A stretch of 64,000 nt of DNA, taken from assembly GCA_020536535.1 (NCBI GenBank), contig JAHLWZ010000850.1:11186-75185 (forward strand), written 5' to 3'. The stretch comes from Pelomyxa schiedti (taxonomy: Eukaryota > Protista > Evosea). Shown piece after piece: positions 1,555-12,100 of this stretch. Position numbers and translations under genes: made by a program. How positions within the stretch are numbered: position 1 is the first letter of the stretch; each line of letters opens with the position of its first letter. Below the pieces are notes generated by a model, which saw only the letters and a list, made by a program, of their open reading frames with translations, did no database searches and was not told where the DNA came from.

Positions 1555-4500
1555 TCAATTAAAAATGGATAACGGGTGTGCCTCTGTGTTGAACACGTAT
1601 TTATCAAGTGGAATGAGGTCGTCTGGCGAATACAACAAGTACAGGTACTGCAATGAGTTGTGGGTGAGTGTTGGTAATACCAAGCAAAAAGGAATTACCT
1701 TGAGTGTTTCTGCCAGGAAATAGCTTGGTTGGGAGTCATCCTTGACAAACTTGCCATCAACTACATTGAGAATCCCACTGTAGCCTCCACCCGCGCACTT
1801 ACAGTGTTTGTCGATTGCCAACCAGAGATCCCAGCCCCAATCTGTGTTGAGTTTTAATATTAGAAGTTAGGGTTTGGGCTGAGTACAGTTTACCTTGATA
1901 AATCGGATCATGTGTCAGCCTCCATAAAATAAACATACTCTCCAGTGTTTCTATCAGAATGTGCTATGAGCTCCGACGAATAAAACTGCAGAAATACCTG
2001 GCCTAAGAAGAAAATGCTTTGCGCCAGCAACAAAGTCAGAGCCGTCAACAAAATTCACAAATTCGGGTGCCAACCCTGGACGGAGGTTAGCTCATTATTC
2101 TGGAGGGTTTGACGGGCCTGAAGGCATTCGCGTCCACATTTCATAACAAGTTCGGGTAATTTCCTTTGCAAGATGCATGTGCAGCTCGCTATCCCTATTT
2201 GGGTGCTGTGTTGAGTTGTATCTGGAGGCTCCCATTGCAAACATTGCTCCAGCAAAGCACGCCTGCATTGCCACAGTTGTTATTGAATAGGTAGTTAAGA
2301 AGCAGATTTCTACGCATACAAGTTCATCCATTTTCGGAACCGCGTGATTGTTGTCGTACTCACTCAAGTAGGTGAGCTTACTTGGAGAAGAAACTTTGAC
2401 AAGATGCTCCACAACACTTTTCATAGCTTCATCGTAGTATTCTCGATATTTTGCTCCCTCAGTTCCTGGACCACTGAGAGGTGTAAATGTGGAGAAAAAA
2501 GGAAATTGTGTACCCAAAAAGAAGCCACATCTTCATGAGGTATTCATAAAAACTATCGCCAAGAGCCCCCAGAGAAACAACAGCTGCAACCGGTAAAAAA
2601 AAACAGAGAAACAGAGGGAAGATTCACATGAGGAAAACTGTCCAGTGCTTGGGTGAATGTACACAGGATATAACCCTTTGTTCTTTGTGGCTGCAACAAG
2701 CTGGTCAATTACTTGCAAAGCCTGTAGTCCTGAAAGAATTATACCAGGTGAAGGAAAGGCGAGGAAAGGGAAATAAAGAATGGGAGTGCCAAAGAAAAAA
2801 GTTTTTCATACTTTCTCCTCAAGTTCTGGGTCGTTAACGTGCCGTGCCAAATAGGTAAATTCTAGTTGAACTGTTCCAACTTCAGAAAGAATAGAGCACC
2901 CCCCACTCCATGAAGGATTCGTTGCTACAGCTCTTTTTGTTGGTTGAGTAGGTTTTTTTCTTCTTGAGGAGCACACACGTTCCAAGGTTGATTGTGGTTT
3001 TTGGGATTCCAGTGGGTGTTTCAAATCCATGGAGTAAGATACGAGCCAAAGTGTGTGCTTTCTCTAGAAACATTTTATCTTTGCTCAAGTCATAAGCACT
3101 CAGGAGACCCCCAACAGTCCGTATTGTGGTCTCAAATATAGAAACATCTACATGCTAGAGTTGCTTTGGTAAGGTAATCACCACTTTCTGTGCAGACCTG
3201 CTGAAAATTGAGGGAATCAGCCACCCAGTCACGTGCTTTTTGGAATTCATCGTAAAGTTCCATTATGAAAAGAGTGTCAAGTGCATCAACCATTGTGAGA
3301 CCGAGATCTGCGAAGATAAGAGAAAGACATTGCCAGGTGTTACACACGAAGCCAATCATTCCCCTCACGGGCAACTGGTCTAAGGTCATCCTTACCCCAG
3401 GCATATTTTGTATAGCCGCCCCAAGCATAAATCATAGCCTGATGAGGATGTGAGGCTTGCTAAATTTTACCAATTACGCACTTGACGAATGGCATCTCTA
3501 CGCTCCTTTATGATAGCTTTCCTTTCATTGAGAGCTTGTTGGTCAACAGGTGATGACAAAGGAAGGACAGTTCCATTACTCGCAGGACTCGACGGAATAA
3601 CTGACAATGAAAGGTGTCCTGGGATGAGCACTCCAGTTTGGGGCACTAGAAGAAAGTTGGGTCAAGTAGCAAGAAAAAGAAGGATGTCACATGATTCATA
3701 AGGCAGGCTGGTGAGTTTCACCACTAAGTAAAGGCAGAAAACGATGAAAATGAGTCCCACAAAAAGGCAGGCCGTATTGGCACTCTTTCCGCGAGTCTTC
3801 AAAGGAGCCACAAAAGATGGGCACCTTGATCTCCGCGTTTTTCTTTTGTGACTTCTGCCAATACCTGCTGGCAGTGGCAACTGTTTTGCCGTCTTTCCTG
3901 CAATTTTGTTTCGAAGCAAACGTCAGGTAACGCAGTGCGTTGGCAAGATCGCCGTACCCTTGTCGTCACTGGAATCGTCTGCCGAAGACACGTCGCTTTC
4001 GTGGTACTGGGACATTCTTTTCAAGTCAAAAGCAAAAATCTGGTTTTTTTTCCTTCCCTTTTTGAGATGTCAAACAGTGACACCTGCGCAGGGGATTTAC
4101 TCCCGAATTGCCAATAAACCCCTCAATTCCAATCCAGCACACGCTCCCAATCTACAATCTCCAATCAATCACCCGCAATCCCCAGTTGCACTCCCACTCC
4201 CCTCCCTCAGTCTTTTTGCTTGGCCGGGGCCTCAGGAATGACTTGGTCGGGCACCTCAGCACGAGATGCCATCATGCTGACGGGCAGGACGTAGTCATCA
4301 GGCTCAACTGGGGGAGGTTCCGCTTCTGGAACGAATTCGTCGCCCCAGGTCGTCGTTTCTGCAGCGTCGGGAATCGGCCTCACGCCCGTGGTCCTCTCAA
4401 GGTCCTCGTCAATATGGGAACTGCAGGCGTTGTGAATTTTAGATGGTTTTGGGTGACCTTTTAATGAGTTTGCTTCGTTTATTTGTATAGTATTTTGTTG

Positions 4501-4635
4501 TGCTTGAGTGTTTGGGACGCACACTACGTCGCTGTAGTTGACGTCGCCCTTTGGCCTAAAATCGTACTCGCTAACAACATCAGCGTTCGTCACCGCTACA
4601 GGCTTCACACCTTCGCTCTTCTTCTCCGTGGCCAT
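1555..4635 (-). CDS. Class I alpha-1,2-mannosidase (GH47), type II membrane protein, multi-exon
   Basis: C-terminal motifs [11 protein letters not shown]|YLYLL...[29 protein letters not shown]-like [13 protein letters not shown] and [11 protein letters not shown]-terminal hydrophobic segment [18 protein letters not shown] follows an acidic cytosolic tail starting MATEKKSEG. Confidence 0.92.
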
Positions 4636-4776
4636 CGTGTCTCAAACAAACTCGCTATGACAAGGGTCAACTTTTTCCTTGTGTAGTACCCATCGTGCAT
4701 CACCATTGGTCATCCCCGTCGTTCCGTTTTTTCGTTTTTTTTTCCCCCTGTTCGCAACGCGAAAAACCGCAAACGA

Positions 4777-6613
4777 ATGGCAGCAACTGCCTCAGACTCT
4801 TCCAACACCAACACCACGCCCTCTGCTGCCTCCTGCTCCCTCCCACAAGAGCCGGGGGGCGGCGGCCCTGCCTCGCCCTCCCCCTCTGCCTCTGCCTCCG
4901 CGTCCTTGTCTGCAACCCCGTCTCCTGCACCCCCTGCGGTGCTGCTGCTGCTCCCAGAGGCGTACGTGGGGTGCATGGTGCTTGGGGCCGTGGGCGACGC
5001 CCTGGGGTACTACGGGGGCCGCTGGGAGTTCATGAAGTCGGGGGCCCAGATACACGCGGAGCTCAGCGAGATGACTCGCGGGGCGGGCGTCCCGGCCCTG
5101 GCTCTGTACGGAAGGGACTGGAGGGTGTCTGACGGTTTGTGCCTTGTGTGAGTGTGGGGTCGGTGGCTTCTGCATTATGGGATGGGAGCCACTGTTTCAA
5201 TTGGGGATTGTGACTTTGTGGGGGTTGTTTTTTGTGTGGCTTCCTCCTATTGTTTCCTTGCCATGATTTCACTATGATTTTTTTTTTGGGCTGTGGAAAT
5301 AGATACTGTGATGCACTTAGCCACAGCTGAGGCTTTGGCCACTGGGGCTGAGGGGAATGAGTTGTATCAATGTATTGCTGCACGCTATGTTGTTTGCTGG
5401 AAAGATATGGGTGGGAGAGCACCAGGTGCGAGCCTTCTGAAGTTTTGCACTTATTACTACTTATTTTGTTATGTGATATGTGGCAAGTTGTAAAGCTTAT
5501 ATTTCAGGCATGTCGTGCCTTACCGGCGTGAAAAGATTACTTGCAGATGGGTCCAACTGGGCGGAATCCGCTTTCAACCCAACTGCTGGAGGTCTCCTCC
5601 CCTCCTTCCTCTCAGCTATAGGCTTATTCCTGCCAGGTTGTGGCGCTGCCATGAGAGCCATGTGCATTGGACTTAAATATCCTCTTGCTTCACAACTGCA
5701 GTCTCTTGTAGCATGCGCTGTAGAGAGTGGTCGTATTACTCACCACAGCCCATCAGGGTATCTTGGCGCGGTTGCAGCAGCGGTATTCACAGGTAATCCA
5801 GACAGTCTTCACTGAAATTTAACCTTTCCAAGCCTACGCCATTCAAAAAGTACCAGTCATAGATTGGGGTTGGAAACTACTTGAAGAAGTTATCCCTGTT
5901 GCTAAGGAACATATCGTGTAAATTTACTTTGCTAGTCTGTGATGTTCATCTTGGTACCAGAAATTCTCGACGGTCAGTGGAACGAAACTTGGCCTTGTTC
6001 GGATATTTCCAAAAAAAGTGGAGTGATTACCTTGAATTGAGATGCATTACAAAAGCCAACAAGACTGGACCCACTTTCCCTGCAAAGTGGGGTGTTGAGG
6101 AAAGAGACTACTTCTACCAGTCTGTGTCCTACAGTGGCTGGGGTGGCTCCAGGTTTCCATCCCTTTTCCTTTTTCCAGTTTTCTTGCTTGCTTTCTTGCT
6201 TGTTTGTTTTACTGGGTTTTGACCGTTGACCAAGAAATAACTGTTAGTGGCCATGATGCCCCCTTGATTGCCTATGATTCCTTGCTGTGGGCAAAAGATA
6301 ACTGGGAGCAATTGTGTTTAGCCGGCATGCTTCATGGAGGTGACAGTGACTCCACAGGTTTGACTCCCCACTTTTTACCCTCATAAGAAAAAAAAAACCC
6401 ATCCCAAAAAAAGGAACTATAGCCGGAGCTCTTTGGGGAGCCGTTTATGGCCTTTCGAAAGTGCCCGAACGGAACTATATGTATGTTGAATATGTTGACA
6501 GAGCTGCCTCTTTGGCTCTTGAAATAGGCCGGGCCTCTCACCCAGACTTTGCTGCACAGGAGGCCCTTATGCCTGGAAACATGTCTCTCAGACCAACACT
6601 ACATGGAATTTAA
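4777..6613 (+). CDS. ADP-ribosylglycohydrolase, ARH1/ADP-ribosylarginine hydrolase-like
   Basis: [28 protein letters not shown]|[41 protein letters not shown]|[10 protein letters not shown] and HGGDSDSTG|[12 protein letters not shown] match ARH1 including the Mg-binding SDDT and DSDS motifs. Stop TAA at 6611-6613. Confidence 0.92.
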
Positions 6614-6710
6614 ATTATGTATCAAACAAACCAACGGAAACATAACCTCAAAATGGTGTTTTTTTATGTTGTTTTTCGTCAAACTTAAACAATTGGGTGG
6701 TGTGCTCCCT

Positions 6711-8756
6711 TTAGAAAATTATCTTCATGAGAAGCAGAGCAATGATAAGCACGATGAGGGACTGCAGGAAACAGGTGAGTACCTGGAAACAAAAGAAGTA
6801 ACATACGATAACAGCAGGGCGCAGAGTAATAACTCTCATGTTAAGAGGTGCTGGAAGGACAAATAGCTTGTTCCATCGGCGTATGACATCACACTCCAGC
6901 GGCGGAATGTACTCACCTGGGCCATAGACAAACCAGCGCGTGCCGGGTTTGCGGTGAAGAACCTGTTGGCGAGCCGGGCGTGATGATGCAGTGGTACTGT
7001 GTGATGGAACTACAGCACTGGCGCCTCCTCCAACCCTGAATCCAAAACCACCAAAGTTAAACCCTCCACACAGTCTAATATTTCGGTCATCAAATTCCTC
7101 CTTGCAAATGAGCTCTAGAGCTTCTTCTTCTCCTGTTCTTTGGTGAGCACATAAAAAAAACGGGGGCGGGGGCGCGGGGGGTGGGGGTTAACGTACCGAG
7201 CACGTAAATCTCTCGCACGCCACCCTCTAGTTGCTCTCCAGGTTGGAGGAAGAAAGTCTGTTCACCCAGTAGAATTTTACGGCATCCAAAGTGCTGAACA
7301 CCAGTTTCATCATAGTAATCGCGGATGATACTAAATTTGTTCGGATTTGATTGAGATATATTAAAAGTACCAGTATTGACGGGATGTGAGAGTTGTAATA
7401 TTCACTGTAGTAACAACCTCCTCACCAACGTCTGGGATATAACTTTCCGCATCCTTCATGGTGACAAGCCATTCTTCACCCTTTTTATGGTATTTTCTGA
7501 AGCGATCCTCAAAACTTAGGCGTGCCCGGAGTTGGAGCGCAGTTTTTGGTGTAAGTACAATGGCCTAGAATGATGAGACTTTACTCTCTTAGGATTAGGA
7601 AAATAACGTCTACTTGCCTTTACTGTGTCTACAACACGTTCCTCTACATCAGGCATATAGGCCTGAAGAATTGTTAAGAGTGAAACAAAAGTAATTCTCG
7701 TACTCCTTCTGCTCGGACAAGCCACTGTTCTCCAGCTTTGCGTGGTGTACCATTGCAGTCAATACAAGCGCGGTTTGCTAGGTGGTGTGGGTCGATTTAT
7801 GAGTGGAATAATGCAAGCACCTGCAAGTTTAAGAGCTGTATCTGGAAGAATAATATGGGCCTAAGAGCTTGAGAAAAATGAAACAAAAACTGTGAGCCTA
7901 CCTTCCTTGTTTCCACAACTTCCACTTCAACACGGGGCTGTAGAGTTTTAAATGAATTACAGGGATAGGTTGCCACTGACCTTGTAGGTGGCGGGCCCCA
8001 TAAATAGCCACTCTTCCCCAGCTTTTCTCTTCACTTGCATTACTTTTGTTGTTGGTGACGTGGCAGTTGAGAGGGTCGGAGTTGAGCTAGTGTTTCCTTC
8101 CACTTTCCCTGGGTTGACAGGTATTTCTACTGTTTCCTCAAAATCCAGATGTGCATGCAAGCGCAGTGCAGTGTTCGGGGCAACGACTTGGAAAGGGGTA
8201 ATTGGGCTCTATTTGATCGCCGATTAATCAAGTGACAACCAAGTCAGAGGCGTACAAGCAAGGCTTCCCCTGGGAACAAGGGGAAAGGATCCTCCTGCTC
8301 AAATCGAATCTCCAAGTCACCGTGTCTCAGTTGAGCTTGACCATCTTTGTCAACCACAACATTATGTTTCTGATCACGAATAACAGGGTTTTTTACAATG
8401 CAATAGTTGCGAGGAGGAATGATCAGCATCTCCTTGGGTCCTGGCGAAAAATACAGGTATTGATATCAGAAAAAAACCGAAACGAAACAAGTAATGGGCA
8501 AAAGAAGGAGCTATTCAAACCTAGGATTACACGTTCGTGTTCCCTACATAAAAATGTCTTGGGACCCACTTCAAGCCGTGTGACGAGCGTGTTCACATCC
8601 AATACATGAAGATAATGAAACGGTGCTACCTGTTTGTTTTGTTGTTTTTTTTGTTGTTGTTTGTTTGTTTGTTTGTGTGAAAACCGTATCTGGTATTTAT
8701 TAATACAGGTGAATCGTGACCAAGCACACCTTGATGAGACACGTGCGCCTGGACAT
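6711..8756 (-). CDS. Major vault protein-like protein: repeats R1-R7 only, plus a C-terminal hydrophobic anchor
   Basis: Spliced translation: MSRRTCLIK|VAPFHYLHVLDVNTLVTRLEVGPKTF; LRHGDLEIRFEQEDPFPLFPGE; AGEEWLFMGPATY; GEQWLVRAEG; GEEWLVTMKDAESYIPDVGEEVV; EQTFFLQPGEQLEGG; PGTRWFVYGPGEYIPPLECDV. It then ends ...SLIVLIIALLLMKIIF* with the stop at 6713-6711. Confidence 0.88.
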
Positions 8757-8799
8757 GCTTTCTTTTGTTTTTTTGTGCAGAATACCAGAATCCGCTTGG

Positions 8800-9020
8800 C
8801 GGTTTAATCGGCCTGTTCTGAATTTTTTCTAAAGAAGGATTGAGGAGATCCTCAGGGGCAGTTCCCCCCGGAGAGTCTTGGGCTGATCCAAAGGTGATGG
8901 CTACCTCCCACTGAGACGGCGATTGCCTTTTCCTTGAGGATATCAGAAATCTCAATCTGATGATCGGGACATCTGTACATGTCCACCATCAAAATAACCT
9001 TCCTTGTTGTTTTTTAACTG
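8800..9020 (+). ncRNA. Candidate box C/D snoRNA cluster (tentative)
   Basis: CUGA boxes at 8818, 8883, 8911, 8957 and 9017; UGAGGA at 8841 and 8935; GUGAUGG at 8894; UGAUGA at 8958. GGCCUGUU-CUGA resembles the U25/snR56-type guide, and CUACCUCCC-A-CUGA is complementary to conserved 18S GGGAGGUAG. No clean canonical box C precedes the first guide. Confidence 0.35.
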
Positions 9021-9131
9021 AAAAACAATTTCTTTTCGGCTGAGAGCCGGCCCCGGCGTGCCCTGAACAAGACTGACAAAAGATTCACAATTACAAAAAA
9101 AAAAACAAAAAGAAAGAGGCGCGTTTGTGCT

Positions 9132-12100
9132 ATGAGCAGTAGCAATGGCGATTCACCAAGGTCGATACACATAAGATCGGCCAGTGTTTCTGCGGTTACG
9201 ACAAGATCTCCGTCTCCAACACCGCCAACGAGGTTAGCGGCGTACGGTTTGGCGAACGGCGCGTGTCACATTCCGATTTCTGCTTCGGGGTCAACGTCCT
9301 CGCCTTCCTTGCTTTCGCCTGGTTTGGCAAGCGAGTTGAGACTTCGCAGTCACAGTGTGATGATGGGCGCATTCGTGCCTGGCAGGGGTGACGTTATGGC
9401 ACCTGTTGCCCAATCTGGTATTAGAACAAGTGGCGAAAACTGCACGTCAGCCCCCCGTGTTGGGTTGATGGAATCAGCAATACCCTTGGCAAAGGATTTA
9501 GTTGTGACTAGCCAGCTGCTTGCCAAATCTGTTACTGGGGAGGTACGGCAAAACTTTTTTTGCTTGGAACTTTTTTCTTGCTAACTAAAACAAAAAGGAA
9601 CGATGTGAATCGGAGGGAACAATTTTGACATTGGCTAAAGACGTCGCATCCCGTGCTCGGGCGATTGAGGAATTGGTTATGTCCCACCTTTCCCAACAAA
9701 CAGTGGGTGAATCACCACTTTGGTCTCAACTTAAGGAAGCTTTGACTAAGGTTTCTAAATCAATGCAAATCCCACCCATTACTCACTCAAAACTATTCCT
9801 GTAAAATGGTTGATTTTTACAAGGTTCAAGCAGCAGTTTTGTCACTCATAAGTGCTGTGAAGGCTGCTTTTTTGAATCCTTTTGATTTGCAGGCATCACA
9901 AAATGTTTTTACAGCCTGCAAGCACATAGCTAAATCCGTGAAAAAGGTTCGTCTCTTTGTCCTCCACTGAGACCTAATCCAGTCAGTTTATGTCTTCTGT
10001 GTCTGTAGTGGAGAAGGCTGTTTGTAGTCCTGTCCTAACCGGACAAGAATCACAGCCACCCACCACAAATAGTGTACCCTCTGTGGCAACTGCGACAGAG
10101 CAAACTCCTGCCGCTGCAGTCGTGAGCACGATTTCTCGTTGTAATCTTACTCACTGTCATTCATACAGACGAAAGGTTCCATCGACGTGATTGCAGTTAC
10201 ACAAGATATTATCAAAGCATTCTTGACCTCACAGCAAGCTATTTCTGTGTGTTGGATTACCCTGGATGCACTCAAATAATTATCCTTAAAGAGTCAGGAT
10301 GAATCTCAATTTATAGAAGGCATACGGCTGCTTGTCAGAAGTTTTAACAAATTCATCGAATATTCTCACCTCCACCATCTTGATCACGCTCAGGTCTTTT
10401 ACTGATTCCACGTAGAAGAATAACCATATAAAAGAGACTGAGAAATATGGCCATGGTAATCGGGCAGCTTTCAAAATCTGCATTTAAATTTCCGTCGGAT
10501 CCAGTATATCAATCAAAGTTTATGCAAGGTATTTTGGATGCGATGGTGGCACTGACGGTTAGTTCCTGAAAGTGGTGAGAAAAAAGTGACTTCACAAAGG
10601 ACATACTTTCAGCAACTTGCTCTGCTACCCCTGAAGCTGCGGAGGCTCTGAAAATTCTTTCAAATGCTAAGACTGAACTTCTTCCAAACCACAGCCCAGA
10701 AACATGTGTGGTGCCCCTCACAAAACATTCTAATGATTGCTTTTAGCACCACAATTAAGCAAGCCGACTGATCCTCCAGTGCCCAAAATATTACTTGCTA
10801 GTGCCCGTTATGATCCGCTTGCTGCACAGCATATCATTCAACTTCTAACCTCTACGTTTCCACTGTTTAAGAAAGAGTGGGAGGAAGCTCCACCTTCACT
10901 TGTTGACTCCACTTTACGTTCCATTGAAAGAATGGTTTCACAGAGTTCCTCTGATGTTTTGAGGTGAATTGTGGCTTTGTCCTTGAGATGCAATAACTTT
11001 CATTTTAGGAAATCGCCAAGCGCCCCTGTTATCACGGGATTTTCTCAAAAAGTATCCATCCTTTTTATCTTAATCACCTCATCATGTGCTAGGGTTCCTC
11101 CACTGGGACATCTCAAAAAACCAAAGCTGTGAGTTATAGCTAACATTATTTTGCCTCTCATAATCGAAAAGGATAAAGTAGAGGAAGTACTTTCAATGCA
11201 CACACTTGCACCATCCCAATCCACTGTTTCTCTTGTTACCAAATCTGCTGTATGCAATAGTAATAATACTAAAAAATCTAACATTAACTTCACCAAGAAC
11301 GTATCCCCATCACCTTTCGTGGCCACTGAGTCTGCCTCTGTAATATCCAACTTACTTAAGGCAGTTTTACAGCAATCCAACATGCTTCTGCGGGGGGAGG
11401 TTTGCCTAATAAGTACTATCCTAACACTCACTCAACTCAGCGGGTATCCCGTATGGATTTAACAAAAAGTGTCGAGGAGTTTATGGCCAGTGTTTGCTCC
11501 CTTCTTGACGAAACATCATCCCATGGGAAAAGTCGAGCGTCTGCTATTGCAGCTCTCACAGCATCCAACAGTTCAGCCACATCATGGGACCCCACTCAAG
11601 GCCCTCAAAAATTAGACCTTCTTTTGGATCAACTTTGTTCTGCATCAATGCAATTAGCAGAGAAGATAAAGACACGCCCTGTGGAGTTGCGTTCCAATTT
11701 TAACAAACACAAGTAACGAGGCATAGAATTGATGAAGCCGCTGTAGCAGATTGTACGGGGAAAAACTCTAAACGAGTCGAAGAGCTATTACTGGGTCAGG
11801 TATACAGGTTTTCCAACTCGTTGAGGTAATCCACATCATGATGGGGTGCATCCTAAACAATCTCTAGGTTCTTCGTAATCCATCTATTTGGTGCACTAAG
11901 ATTGATCTCTGGGTCAGGTGGCACTAGTACTAGCACAGTGCCAATGTTAGCTGCTATGATGCAACTTGTTGCTGCTTGTCAATGTCTTCTCTCTGGATCA
12001 CAGACATTCCTGTGTCATGTTGGGACATTGCAGTGCATCACTTCAAGTAATTTTCCCCGAAACCATATTTGTTCTAATCCAAAAATTAGGAGATTCAGGG

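Follow-up and report, generated by a model that had tools for sequence, protein, structure and literature searches.

The stretch of DNA considered here, from the anaerobic amoeba Pelomyxa schiedti (Archamoebae), which we call the window, spans 64,000 nucleotides (nt) of contig JAHLWZ010000850.1 (GenBank assembly GCA_020536535.1, positions 11,186 to 75,185 of the forward strand), and all positions below are counted from its first letter. On its minus strand, from 8756 to 6711, lies a 12-exon gene related to the gene for MVP (major vault protein), which forms the wall of the vault particle. A first-pass annotation, made from the sequence alone, had read this gene as a truncated MVP paralog of seven repeats (R1-R7) that lacks the shoulder and cap helix and ends in a membrane anchor. 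The product has 482 amino acids (482 codons and a stop) and is identical to the database protein P0151, listed at NCBI as 'Major vault protein [Pelomyxa schiedti]', and the N-terminus of our gene model is likewise that of the NCBI model.

Transcript and architecture of the short MVP

The introns of the gene are short (40-100 nt); the gene model has 10 GT-AG introns and a single GC-AG one. When placed on positions 3700-9500, contigs of three single-cell RNA libraries reproduced introns 2-11 exactly. The GC-AG intron, intron 8 (donor AAG/GCAAGT), appeared as the same 53-nt skip in all three RNA runs, and the last intron, which is in frame, is spliced out of the mRNA (Table 1). Exon 1 and the intron 1 joint lie outside this read confirmation, and the low-complexity stretch 8631-8684 was excluded from the read comparison. 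That stretch is a (CAAA)n-type run in intron 1 (minus strand), and DNA contigs from a further run (X4) break on either side of it, at 8630 and 8685. Contig depth in the RNA data was 70-180 over the short MVP gene and 2-12 over its convergent neighbor. Four transcript variants fall in the coding sequence; three are synonymous and one, A395S, is a non-synonymous change within a disordered insert.

The 3' end of the message was captured directly. A 1513-nt contig (X2) stops at 6646 in 21 A followed by G, at a place where the genome has no A-run, and an anchored oligo-dT primer would be expected to leave such an ending. The message thus terminates about 65 nt beyond the stop codon and is not spliced on to exons for a shoulder or cap. 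The first-pass claim that the gene has no further exons holds by the poly(A) end at about 6646.

At the protein level, the seven repeats and the lack of a shoulder and cap helix were also borne out. Pfam matches were Vault (PF01505; 169 bits in 4 stretches) and Vault_2 (PF17794; 108 bits), and the 482-amino-acid protein gave no match at E <= 0.01 to Vault_3 (PF17795), Vault_4 (PF17796) or MVP_shoulder (PF11978), and none to the Band_7 (SPFH) domain. Homology to solved MVPs in the PDB runs in register from MVP residue 47 and stops at 376-379, which is the end of R7. Of R8 and R9 there remain only about 19 residues, which correspond by homology to R8's first strand, and the protein ends 37 residues past R7 without a shoulder. 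The long cap helix and the cap ring, which drive 39-mer assembly in the canonical MVP of the 78-mer vault particle, are absent as well, and the sole helix, at residues 461-481, is purely hydrophobic.

An AlphaFold2 model built from a 31-sequence family alignment (mean predicted local distance difference test, pLDDT, 86.3) is a rod of beta-sandwich repeats followed by this single helix, with two disordered lineage-specific inserts (residues 136-160 and 373-412) and two short extra strands. Of the solved structures, a crystal fragment of murine MVP comprising R1-R7 matches it best (3GNG/3GF5; E 7e-37, 42% identity). Full vault cages are the next structural matches, aligned over the first ~380 residues only.

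Kyte-Doolittle hydropathy over 19 residues reaches 3.05 in the C-terminal tail against a maximum of 1.06 elsewhere, and the last 20 residues are almost all Ile, Leu, Val or Ala. By hydropathy the protein has no signal peptide and no second transmembrane segment, its N-terminus being the start of R1. One residue lies beyond the hydrophobic core, and the chain ends in KIIF directly after the helix. In having one transmembrane segment at its very C-terminal end, followed by no more than about 30 residues, and no signal peptide, the protein shows the sequence features of the tail-anchored class.

Table 1. Features of the short MVP gene, with positions in the window and the evidence for each
Feature	Position	Strand	Evidence
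Whole coding region	6711..8756	-	Model identical to P0151; RNA-supported splice joints
Exon 1: start codon, residues 1-9	8730..8756	-	GT donor; same N-terminus as P0151; joint without read support
Exon 2: rest of R1	8521..8629	-	X2 contig spans 8520-8630
Exon 3: R2	8256..8440	-	Pfam Vault_2, 89.6 bits; joints 8439/8520 and 8208/8256
Exon 4: R3 and lineage-specific insert (residues 136-160, 8050-8124)	7981..8208	-	Pfam Vault; insert of low pLDDT; RNA joints
Exon 5	7902..7937	-	Joints 7937/7981 and 7859/7901
Exon 6	7821..7860	-	RNA joints
Exon 7: R4 core	7704..7777	-	Pfam Vault; RNA joints
Exon 8, followed by GC-AG intron 7565-7617	7618..7662	-	53-nt skip in three RNA runs; donor GCAAGT
Exon 9: R5 and start of R6	7371..7564	-	Pfam Vault, 50 bits; RNA joints
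Exon 10: R6	7197..7330	-	Pfam Vault_2; RNA joints
Exon 11: R7, juxtamembrane strand and first four residues of the membrane helix; Gly/Phe/Ser-rich insert inside	6807..7132	-	Pfam Vault; PDB homology to ~376
Conserved end of R7, residues 418-443, R..G..W...GP.EY.PP motif	6876..6953	-	R418, G421, G428 and P429 invariant in 31 family members
Juxtamembrane strand, residues 444-462	6819..6875	-	Family alignment; tail comparison; AlphaFold2 strands 448-450 and 456-458
Intron 11, 45 nt, in frame	6762..6806	-	Joint 6761/6807, depth 180 (X1) and 72 (X2)
Exon 12: rest of the transmembrane helix (residues 467-482) and stop	6711..6761	-	Hydropathy; AlphaFold2 helix; tail kept in P0152
Whole transmembrane segment, residues 463-482	6807-6818 plus 6714-6761	-	Hydropathy 3.05; AlphaFold2 helix 461-481
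3' untranslated region	6629..6710	-	Poly(A) site ~6646 (T21 loose end, X2); X1 contig reaches 6629

The convergent neighbor is a spliced gene for an ADP-ribosylglycohydrolase (ARH; 4777-6613, plus strand; Pfam ADP_ribosyl_GH, 52 bits), with RNA-confirmed introns at 5134-5301, ~5423-5504, 5918-5960, 6151-6245 and 6356-6411. Its end at 6613 lies 97 nt from the MVP stop, the distance given in the first-pass annotation, and the two transcripts come close to meeting, or overlap, at their 3' ends, the ARH transcript reaching at least 6614 and the MVP transcript 6646/6629. Vaults carry PARP, and the presence of an ADP-ribose hydrolase gene beside an MVP paralog is probably a coincidence. Minus-strand open reading frames farther downstream look, judged by eye and without a family-library search, like those of a glycosyl-hydrolase-type gene and not of an MVP. 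We considered whether more MVP exons might lie past the ARH gene, which the poly(A) contig rules out, and whether the locus might be an assembly artefact, which is ruled out by an X4 DNA contig collinear with the window over 3700-8630.

A conserved family of short MVPs

A search with exon 3 across 1.8 billion representative proteins returned many MVP-like proteins of only 380-530 amino acids, and two further searches added members. Each match list covered the best 120 matches, and the family counts given here are lower bounds. At least 48 proteins, a few near-duplicates included, combine R1-R7 with a C-terminal transmembrane helix, so that the architecture is not peculiar to the Pelomyxa genome but is that of a conserved family. 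They follow a common plan of R1-R7, a conserved strand and about 20 hydrophobic residues, after which the protein either ends or continues into a polar tail of at most ~24 residues (0-24 residues beyond the hydrophobic core across the family). The retention of a hydrophobic end in these relatives, together with the hydropathy and the modeled helix, agrees with the C-terminal membrane anchor that the first-pass annotation had predicted.

The conserved juxtamembrane strand has the consensus A-F-(L/I)-x-(I/V)-E-(A/P)-L-(N/G)-(L/I)-Y-(F/I)-F-x-P and lines up with canonical R8 at its first strand (…AIPLDENEGIYVRD…). The Pelomyxa protein carries a divergent form (…LPAPLNMRVITLRP), shared with P0152, a protein from a metatranscriptome that is its closest relative (71% protein identity, same tail ending in KIIF).

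Named members of the family are Mastigella eilhardi P0007/P0267, Acanthamoeba castellanii P0311 (L8GWT3/XP_004339473, 477 amino acids), Balamuthia mandrillaris P0396 and Pyxidicula operculata P0268. The Acanthamoeba protein, which ends in QQEL, is also the top AlphaFold DB match and aligns over its whole length, helix included. Eight more short forms stop directly after the juxtamembrane motif and have no transmembrane segment: Ceratiomyxa fruticulosa P0018, Filamoeba P0378/P0163, and P0005, P0074, P0080, P0115 and P0166. Ends among these members of the short clade include …LGIYAFYF, …LGLYTLYM and …FFFW…. The named members are all Amoebozoa and most others come from unlabelled metatranscriptomes; the family is conserved at least Amoebozoa-wide. 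Short and canonical MVPs occur together in Ceratiomyxa (canonical P0274, short P0018), Balamuthia (canonical P0356, short P0396) and Acanthamoeba (canonical L8GQU5, from PMC3762200; short P0311). Feature and shape searches of the ESM Atlas returned only generic MVP/SPFH clusters, without useful taxa.

One member, P0242, lies on a 98-kb metagenome contig (L001 6001-7251, ERZ929229) and ends in KKEL. Its open reading frame begins at the R1/R2 boundary, where Pelomyxa has intron 2, which hints that this intron position is conserved. Among the neighbors of P0242 is a gene with a faint FNIP-repeat match.

To place the short proteins we built a tree with IQ-TREE (LG+C20+F+G4) from 51 short and 40 full-length canonical sequences, each trimmed after R7 to keep the tail from affecting the outcome. 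Short and canonical MVPs fell on opposite sides of one branch (Shimodaira-Hasegawa-like approximate likelihood ratio test, SH-aLRT, 99), and the split recurred, less strongly supported, in a FastTree of 115 rows. The status of the Pelomyxa gene as a paralog, claimed in the first-pass annotation, therefore stands, its protein belonging to one clade apart from the canonical MVPs. Its nearest relatives in the tree are P0152 and then Mastigella P0267. Seen from the short clade, the canonical tree first splits into metazoan-type and amoebozoan-type MVPs, which indicates that the short family is not a recent offshoot of amoebozoan MVP. The age of the family is not firmly datable, given long-branch effects and an unknown root.

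Comparison of the Pelomyxa coding sequence with that of P0152 (L002) gave a proportion of nonsynonymous differences (pN) of 0.19 and of synonymous differences (pS) of 0.77, the latter saturated. Across regions, pN was 0.12-0.13 in R1-R6, 0.19 in the R7 end with its motif, 0.32 in the helix and 0.385 in the disordered insert, and each change in the helix is hydrophobic for hydrophobic. This pattern is that of a constrained protein with a membrane segment and not of non-coding read-through, and the coding sequence is under purifying selection. The insert in R7 (…CGGFNFGGFGFRVGGG…; 6969-7088, minus strand, residues 373-412) is Gly/Phe/Ser-rich with an FG/RGG-like flavor, has a pLDDT of 40-47, is common to P0152 only and is the fastest-evolving part of the protein.

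Predicted topology and arrangement at the endoplasmic reticulum

Where family members have a tail, it tends to end in one way. Among the 28 transmembrane members with at least 8 residues past the hydrophobic core, 24 have a C-terminal -[D/E]L, with ends such as KDEL, KKEL, KQEL, KSEL, QQEL, YDEL, KTDL and SADL; such an end occurs in 0 of the 89 canonical full-length MVPs. For a K/HDEL-type end to function, it must lie inside the lumen of the early secretory pathway. The recurrence of this end therefore points to a likely topology with the N-terminus in the cytosol and the C-terminus in the lumen, and to the endoplasmic reticulum (ER), together with the nuclear envelope, as the likely address. 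For the family as a whole, judged from its sequences, a tail-anchored topology at the ER is likely, and the -xEL ends of the relatives lead us to predict that insertion is post-translational and leaves the N-terminus in the cytosol. As a general rule, tail anchors of high hydrophobicity are sent to the ER, and it is through this rule that ER residence would extend to the Pelomyxa, P0152 and Mastigella proteins.

The Pelomyxa gene is highly expressed, and we consider it fairly probable that it is functional and encodes a tail-anchored membrane protein of a conserved MVP paralog family, with a proposed rod or ring at the ER. The helix would be inserted post-translationally into the ER membrane, so that the seven-repeat rod, roughly 14-15 nm long by estimate, would project into the cytosol, its N-terminus facing away from the bilayer. 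Many relatives would have a luminal tail of at most ~24 residues with a K/x-D/E-L end, by which the KDEL receptor would retain them in the ER; the Pelomyxa protein, which has no luminal tail, would rely on its very hydrophobic helix instead. The rods would probably stand side by side as they do in the vault barrel and so make up an open ring or palisade on the membrane. Through its free R1 rim, such a ring could join either a canonical half vault or a second ring; alternatively, it could show its repeat wall to vault partners at the ER surface. The protein may act as a vault tether or receptor.

What argues for this packing is the retention of canonical constraints in the repeats. The R1-R7 consensus is equal in the short and canonical families at 63-81% of columns per repeat, and across R1-R7 no column is fixed differently between the two, so that the rod seems to be under the same surface constraints as the vault wall. 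At the waist of human MVP, as recently defined, the half vaults meet through N22, Q38, N40, D39-R42 and a patch of hydrophobic character (PMC13347060). Retained in the short family are N22 (35/37), D/E39 (30/41), H/N40 (34/41) and K/R42 (24/41), along with the hydrophobic position 7. With these constraints and most waist residues retained, the rods are probably packed side by side, and the sequences suggest packing on a membrane that leaves the R1 rim free for pairing with a second R1 rim.

Several observations weigh against this account. The Pelomyxa, P0152 and Mastigella proteins, on inspection of their C-termini, have no -[D/E]L tail, and for the Pelomyxa gene and its closest relatives ER residence is thus an extrapolation. 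Membrane insertion, topology, location and oligomerization are predictions for all family members, and the eight relatives that lack a helix may represent either soluble forms or truncated transcripts. At the waist, Q38 is not kept by the short family, which mostly has L or K there. In the canonical vault it is chiefly the shoulder and cap helix that drive assembly, and R1-R6 make weak lateral contacts (PMC13347060), so that with shoulder and cap helix missing the formation of a ring is not assured. The best 120 matches of each list contain no entry for a second, canonical Pelomyxa MVP.

Some of these points would suit a family with no part in vaults. The short protein could be an autonomous scaffold of the ER or endomembranes unrelated to vault particles, for example a spacer or tether in which R1 pairs in trans between two membranes, or a docking rod for repeat-binding PARP or TEP1-like partners. 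The age of the family and its separation from canonical MVPs fit this idea, as do the change at Q38, the lack of a canonical P. schiedti MVP in the match lists and the very high expression of the short protein on its own. R1-R7, however, keeps the canonical constraints with no family-specific fixed difference, and short and canonical forms co-occur in all three species that could be checked. We regard an autonomous scaffold as possible, at a clear minority of the weight.

A more specific form of the tether proposal arises from vaults already seen on membranes. By cryo-electron tomography, Geissler et al. (Nat Commun 2026; PMC13100048) found 1.4% of Dictyostelium vaults standing upright on the cytosolic face of the ER or nuclear envelope, with ~50 nm visible, that is two thirds of the 75-nm particle, equator included. 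The membrane, which continues unbroken beneath the particle, meets the barrel at one defined height, with no cage density below it, and according to the authors the vault has no known membrane-associating motif (PMC13100048). Their check for truncation used antibodies against MVPA peptides (PMC13100048), which a separate short paralog would escape, and the portions of the supplements available to us name no third vault protein. It is conceivable, and in our judgment unlikely, that the short tail-anchored family is the vault's missing membrane anchor, with an R1-R7 ring docked rim to rim with a canonical half vault. The particle would be a hybrid of a short-MVP ring in the ER or nuclear envelope and one canonical half vault, paired through R1. 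Its height above the bilayer is estimated at ~50 nm, from ~37 nm for the half vault and ~14 nm for seven repeats. On a continuous bilayer it would give the picture of a two-thirds vault at a defined barrel height. For Dictyostelium, a Swiss-Prot fold search lists only MvpA and MvpB and no short transmembrane form, and a search with the poly-Asn-rich member P0070 had no dictyostelid among the matches listed, which is not proof of absence. Against such a hybrid stand these searches, the authors' placement of the membrane at the shoulder, two repeats past the end of the short protein (PMC13100048), and the weakness of R1-R6 lateral contacts without a cap helix (PMC13347060).

The short protein might also be inserted laterally among full-length chains of an otherwise normal shell, as a membrane tag or as a regulator (a spoiler) of assembly. 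The per-repeat consensus identity with canonical MVP would allow this, and Dictyostelium vaults are already hetero-oligomers of MVPA and MVPB (PMC13100048). A chain without R8-R9, shoulder and cap helix would, however, leave a gap in the shell, and its helix would be directed to the height of the shoulder in its own half, an arrangement difficult to fit with a flat bilayer; we think lateral incorporation improbable. Less plausible still is that the hydrophobic end is an oligomerization or aggregation helix of a soluble protein, a substitute for the cap helix that closes a small cage. The canonical cap helix does form an Ala/Leu-rich bundle of 39 helices (PMC13347060), and eight relatives have no transmembrane segment. 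But the end consists of ~20 residues, almost all of them Ile, Leu, Val or Phe, with a hydropathy of ~3.0, its sequence varies freely with only hydrophobicity kept, and the short polar tail with a -K/x-D/E-L end, which follows it in most members that have a tail, is sensible only in the ER lumen.

That the gene is a decaying fragment, a mis-assembly or the front part of a gene with shoulder and cap exons elsewhere can be set aside with near certainty: truncation past R7 followed by hydrophobic read-through does resemble a broken gene, but the locus is expressed, its polyadenylated mRNA ends 65 nt past the stop, a DNA contig of another run matches across it, frame and stop are kept in P0152 at 71% identity despite saturated synonymous sites, and the same architecture recurs in at least 48 proteins of several genera.

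Relation to known systems

The tail-anchored reading sets the short MVPs between several known systems. To canonical MVP (rat and human MVP, Dictyostelium MvpA and MvpB) they are collinear over R1-R7, at ~42% identity and Foldseek E values of 1e-35 to 1e-39, and the waist-contact residues of R1 are mostly retained in the family; they differ in lacking R8-R9, the SPFH-like shoulder, the cap helix and the cap ring, in ending in a transmembrane helix and in forming a separate clade. The murine R1-R7 fragment (3GF5, 3GNF, 3GNG) has the same domain content (TM-score 0.73 by target), and the natural protein stops almost exactly where this stable laboratory fragment ends. The fragment, however, is an engineered truncation, whereas the Pelomyxa protein is a natural product that adds a juxtamembrane strand, a membrane helix and two disordered inserts. 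For the membrane-bound vaults of Dictyostelium (PMC13100048) the family would supply both a membrane motif and an ER address, although the vaults seen there consist of full-length MVPA and MVPB in an organism for which no short transmembrane form was found.

Two other classes of membrane protein offer partial parallels. SPFH cages (flotillin, erlin, stomatin, prohibitin and HflK/C), which are evolutionary kin of the MVP shoulder (PMC13100048), form oligomeric walls on a patch of membrane and have a terminal hydrophobic anchor. The short MVPs, in contrast, have no SPFH domain, carry the anchor at the C-terminus instead of the N-terminus and would build the wall from MVP repeats. The plan of a cytosolic domain, a transmembrane segment and a luminal KDEL-type tail, as found in the family, is that of tail-anchored proteins of the Sec20p type. 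Yeast Sec20p has a cytosolic N-terminal domain, one C-terminal transmembrane segment and a short luminal H/KDEL tail; its cytosolic domain is unrelated to that of the short MVPs, and the Pelomyxa member has no luminal tail.

The first-pass annotation knew of no described protein with this architecture. Full-text literature searches found no description of a short membrane-anchored MVP family, and it is absent from both surveys of MVP evolution by Daly et al. The sequences themselves, however, are already in databases under automatic names, among them 'major vault protein', 'major vault protein alpha, putative' and 'membrane protein involved in colicin uptake'. The family is thus apparently undescribed. 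An MVP of the heliozoan Raphidiophrys contractilis reportedly binds beta-1,3-glucan and takes part in food capture, to go by the title of a 2017 paper by Bhadra et al.

The function of vaults has been open since 1986. Here a conserved and expressed paralog fuses the wall of the vault barrel to a predicted membrane anchor, and where its relatives have a tail it mostly ends in an ER-retrieval-type signal. The family therefore offers a concrete and testable molecular link between vault architecture and the ER, and it could explain how vaults attach to that membrane. Since members occur in culturable amoebae that also have a canonical MVP (Acanthamoeba castellanii and Balamuthia), localization, knockout and cryo-electron tomography are feasible. 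Should the short proteins prove unrelated to vault particles, they would represent the first membrane-integral use of the MVP repeat fold; should they dock with canonical half vaults as proposed, the function of vaults at the ER would become genetically testable in Acanthamoeba.

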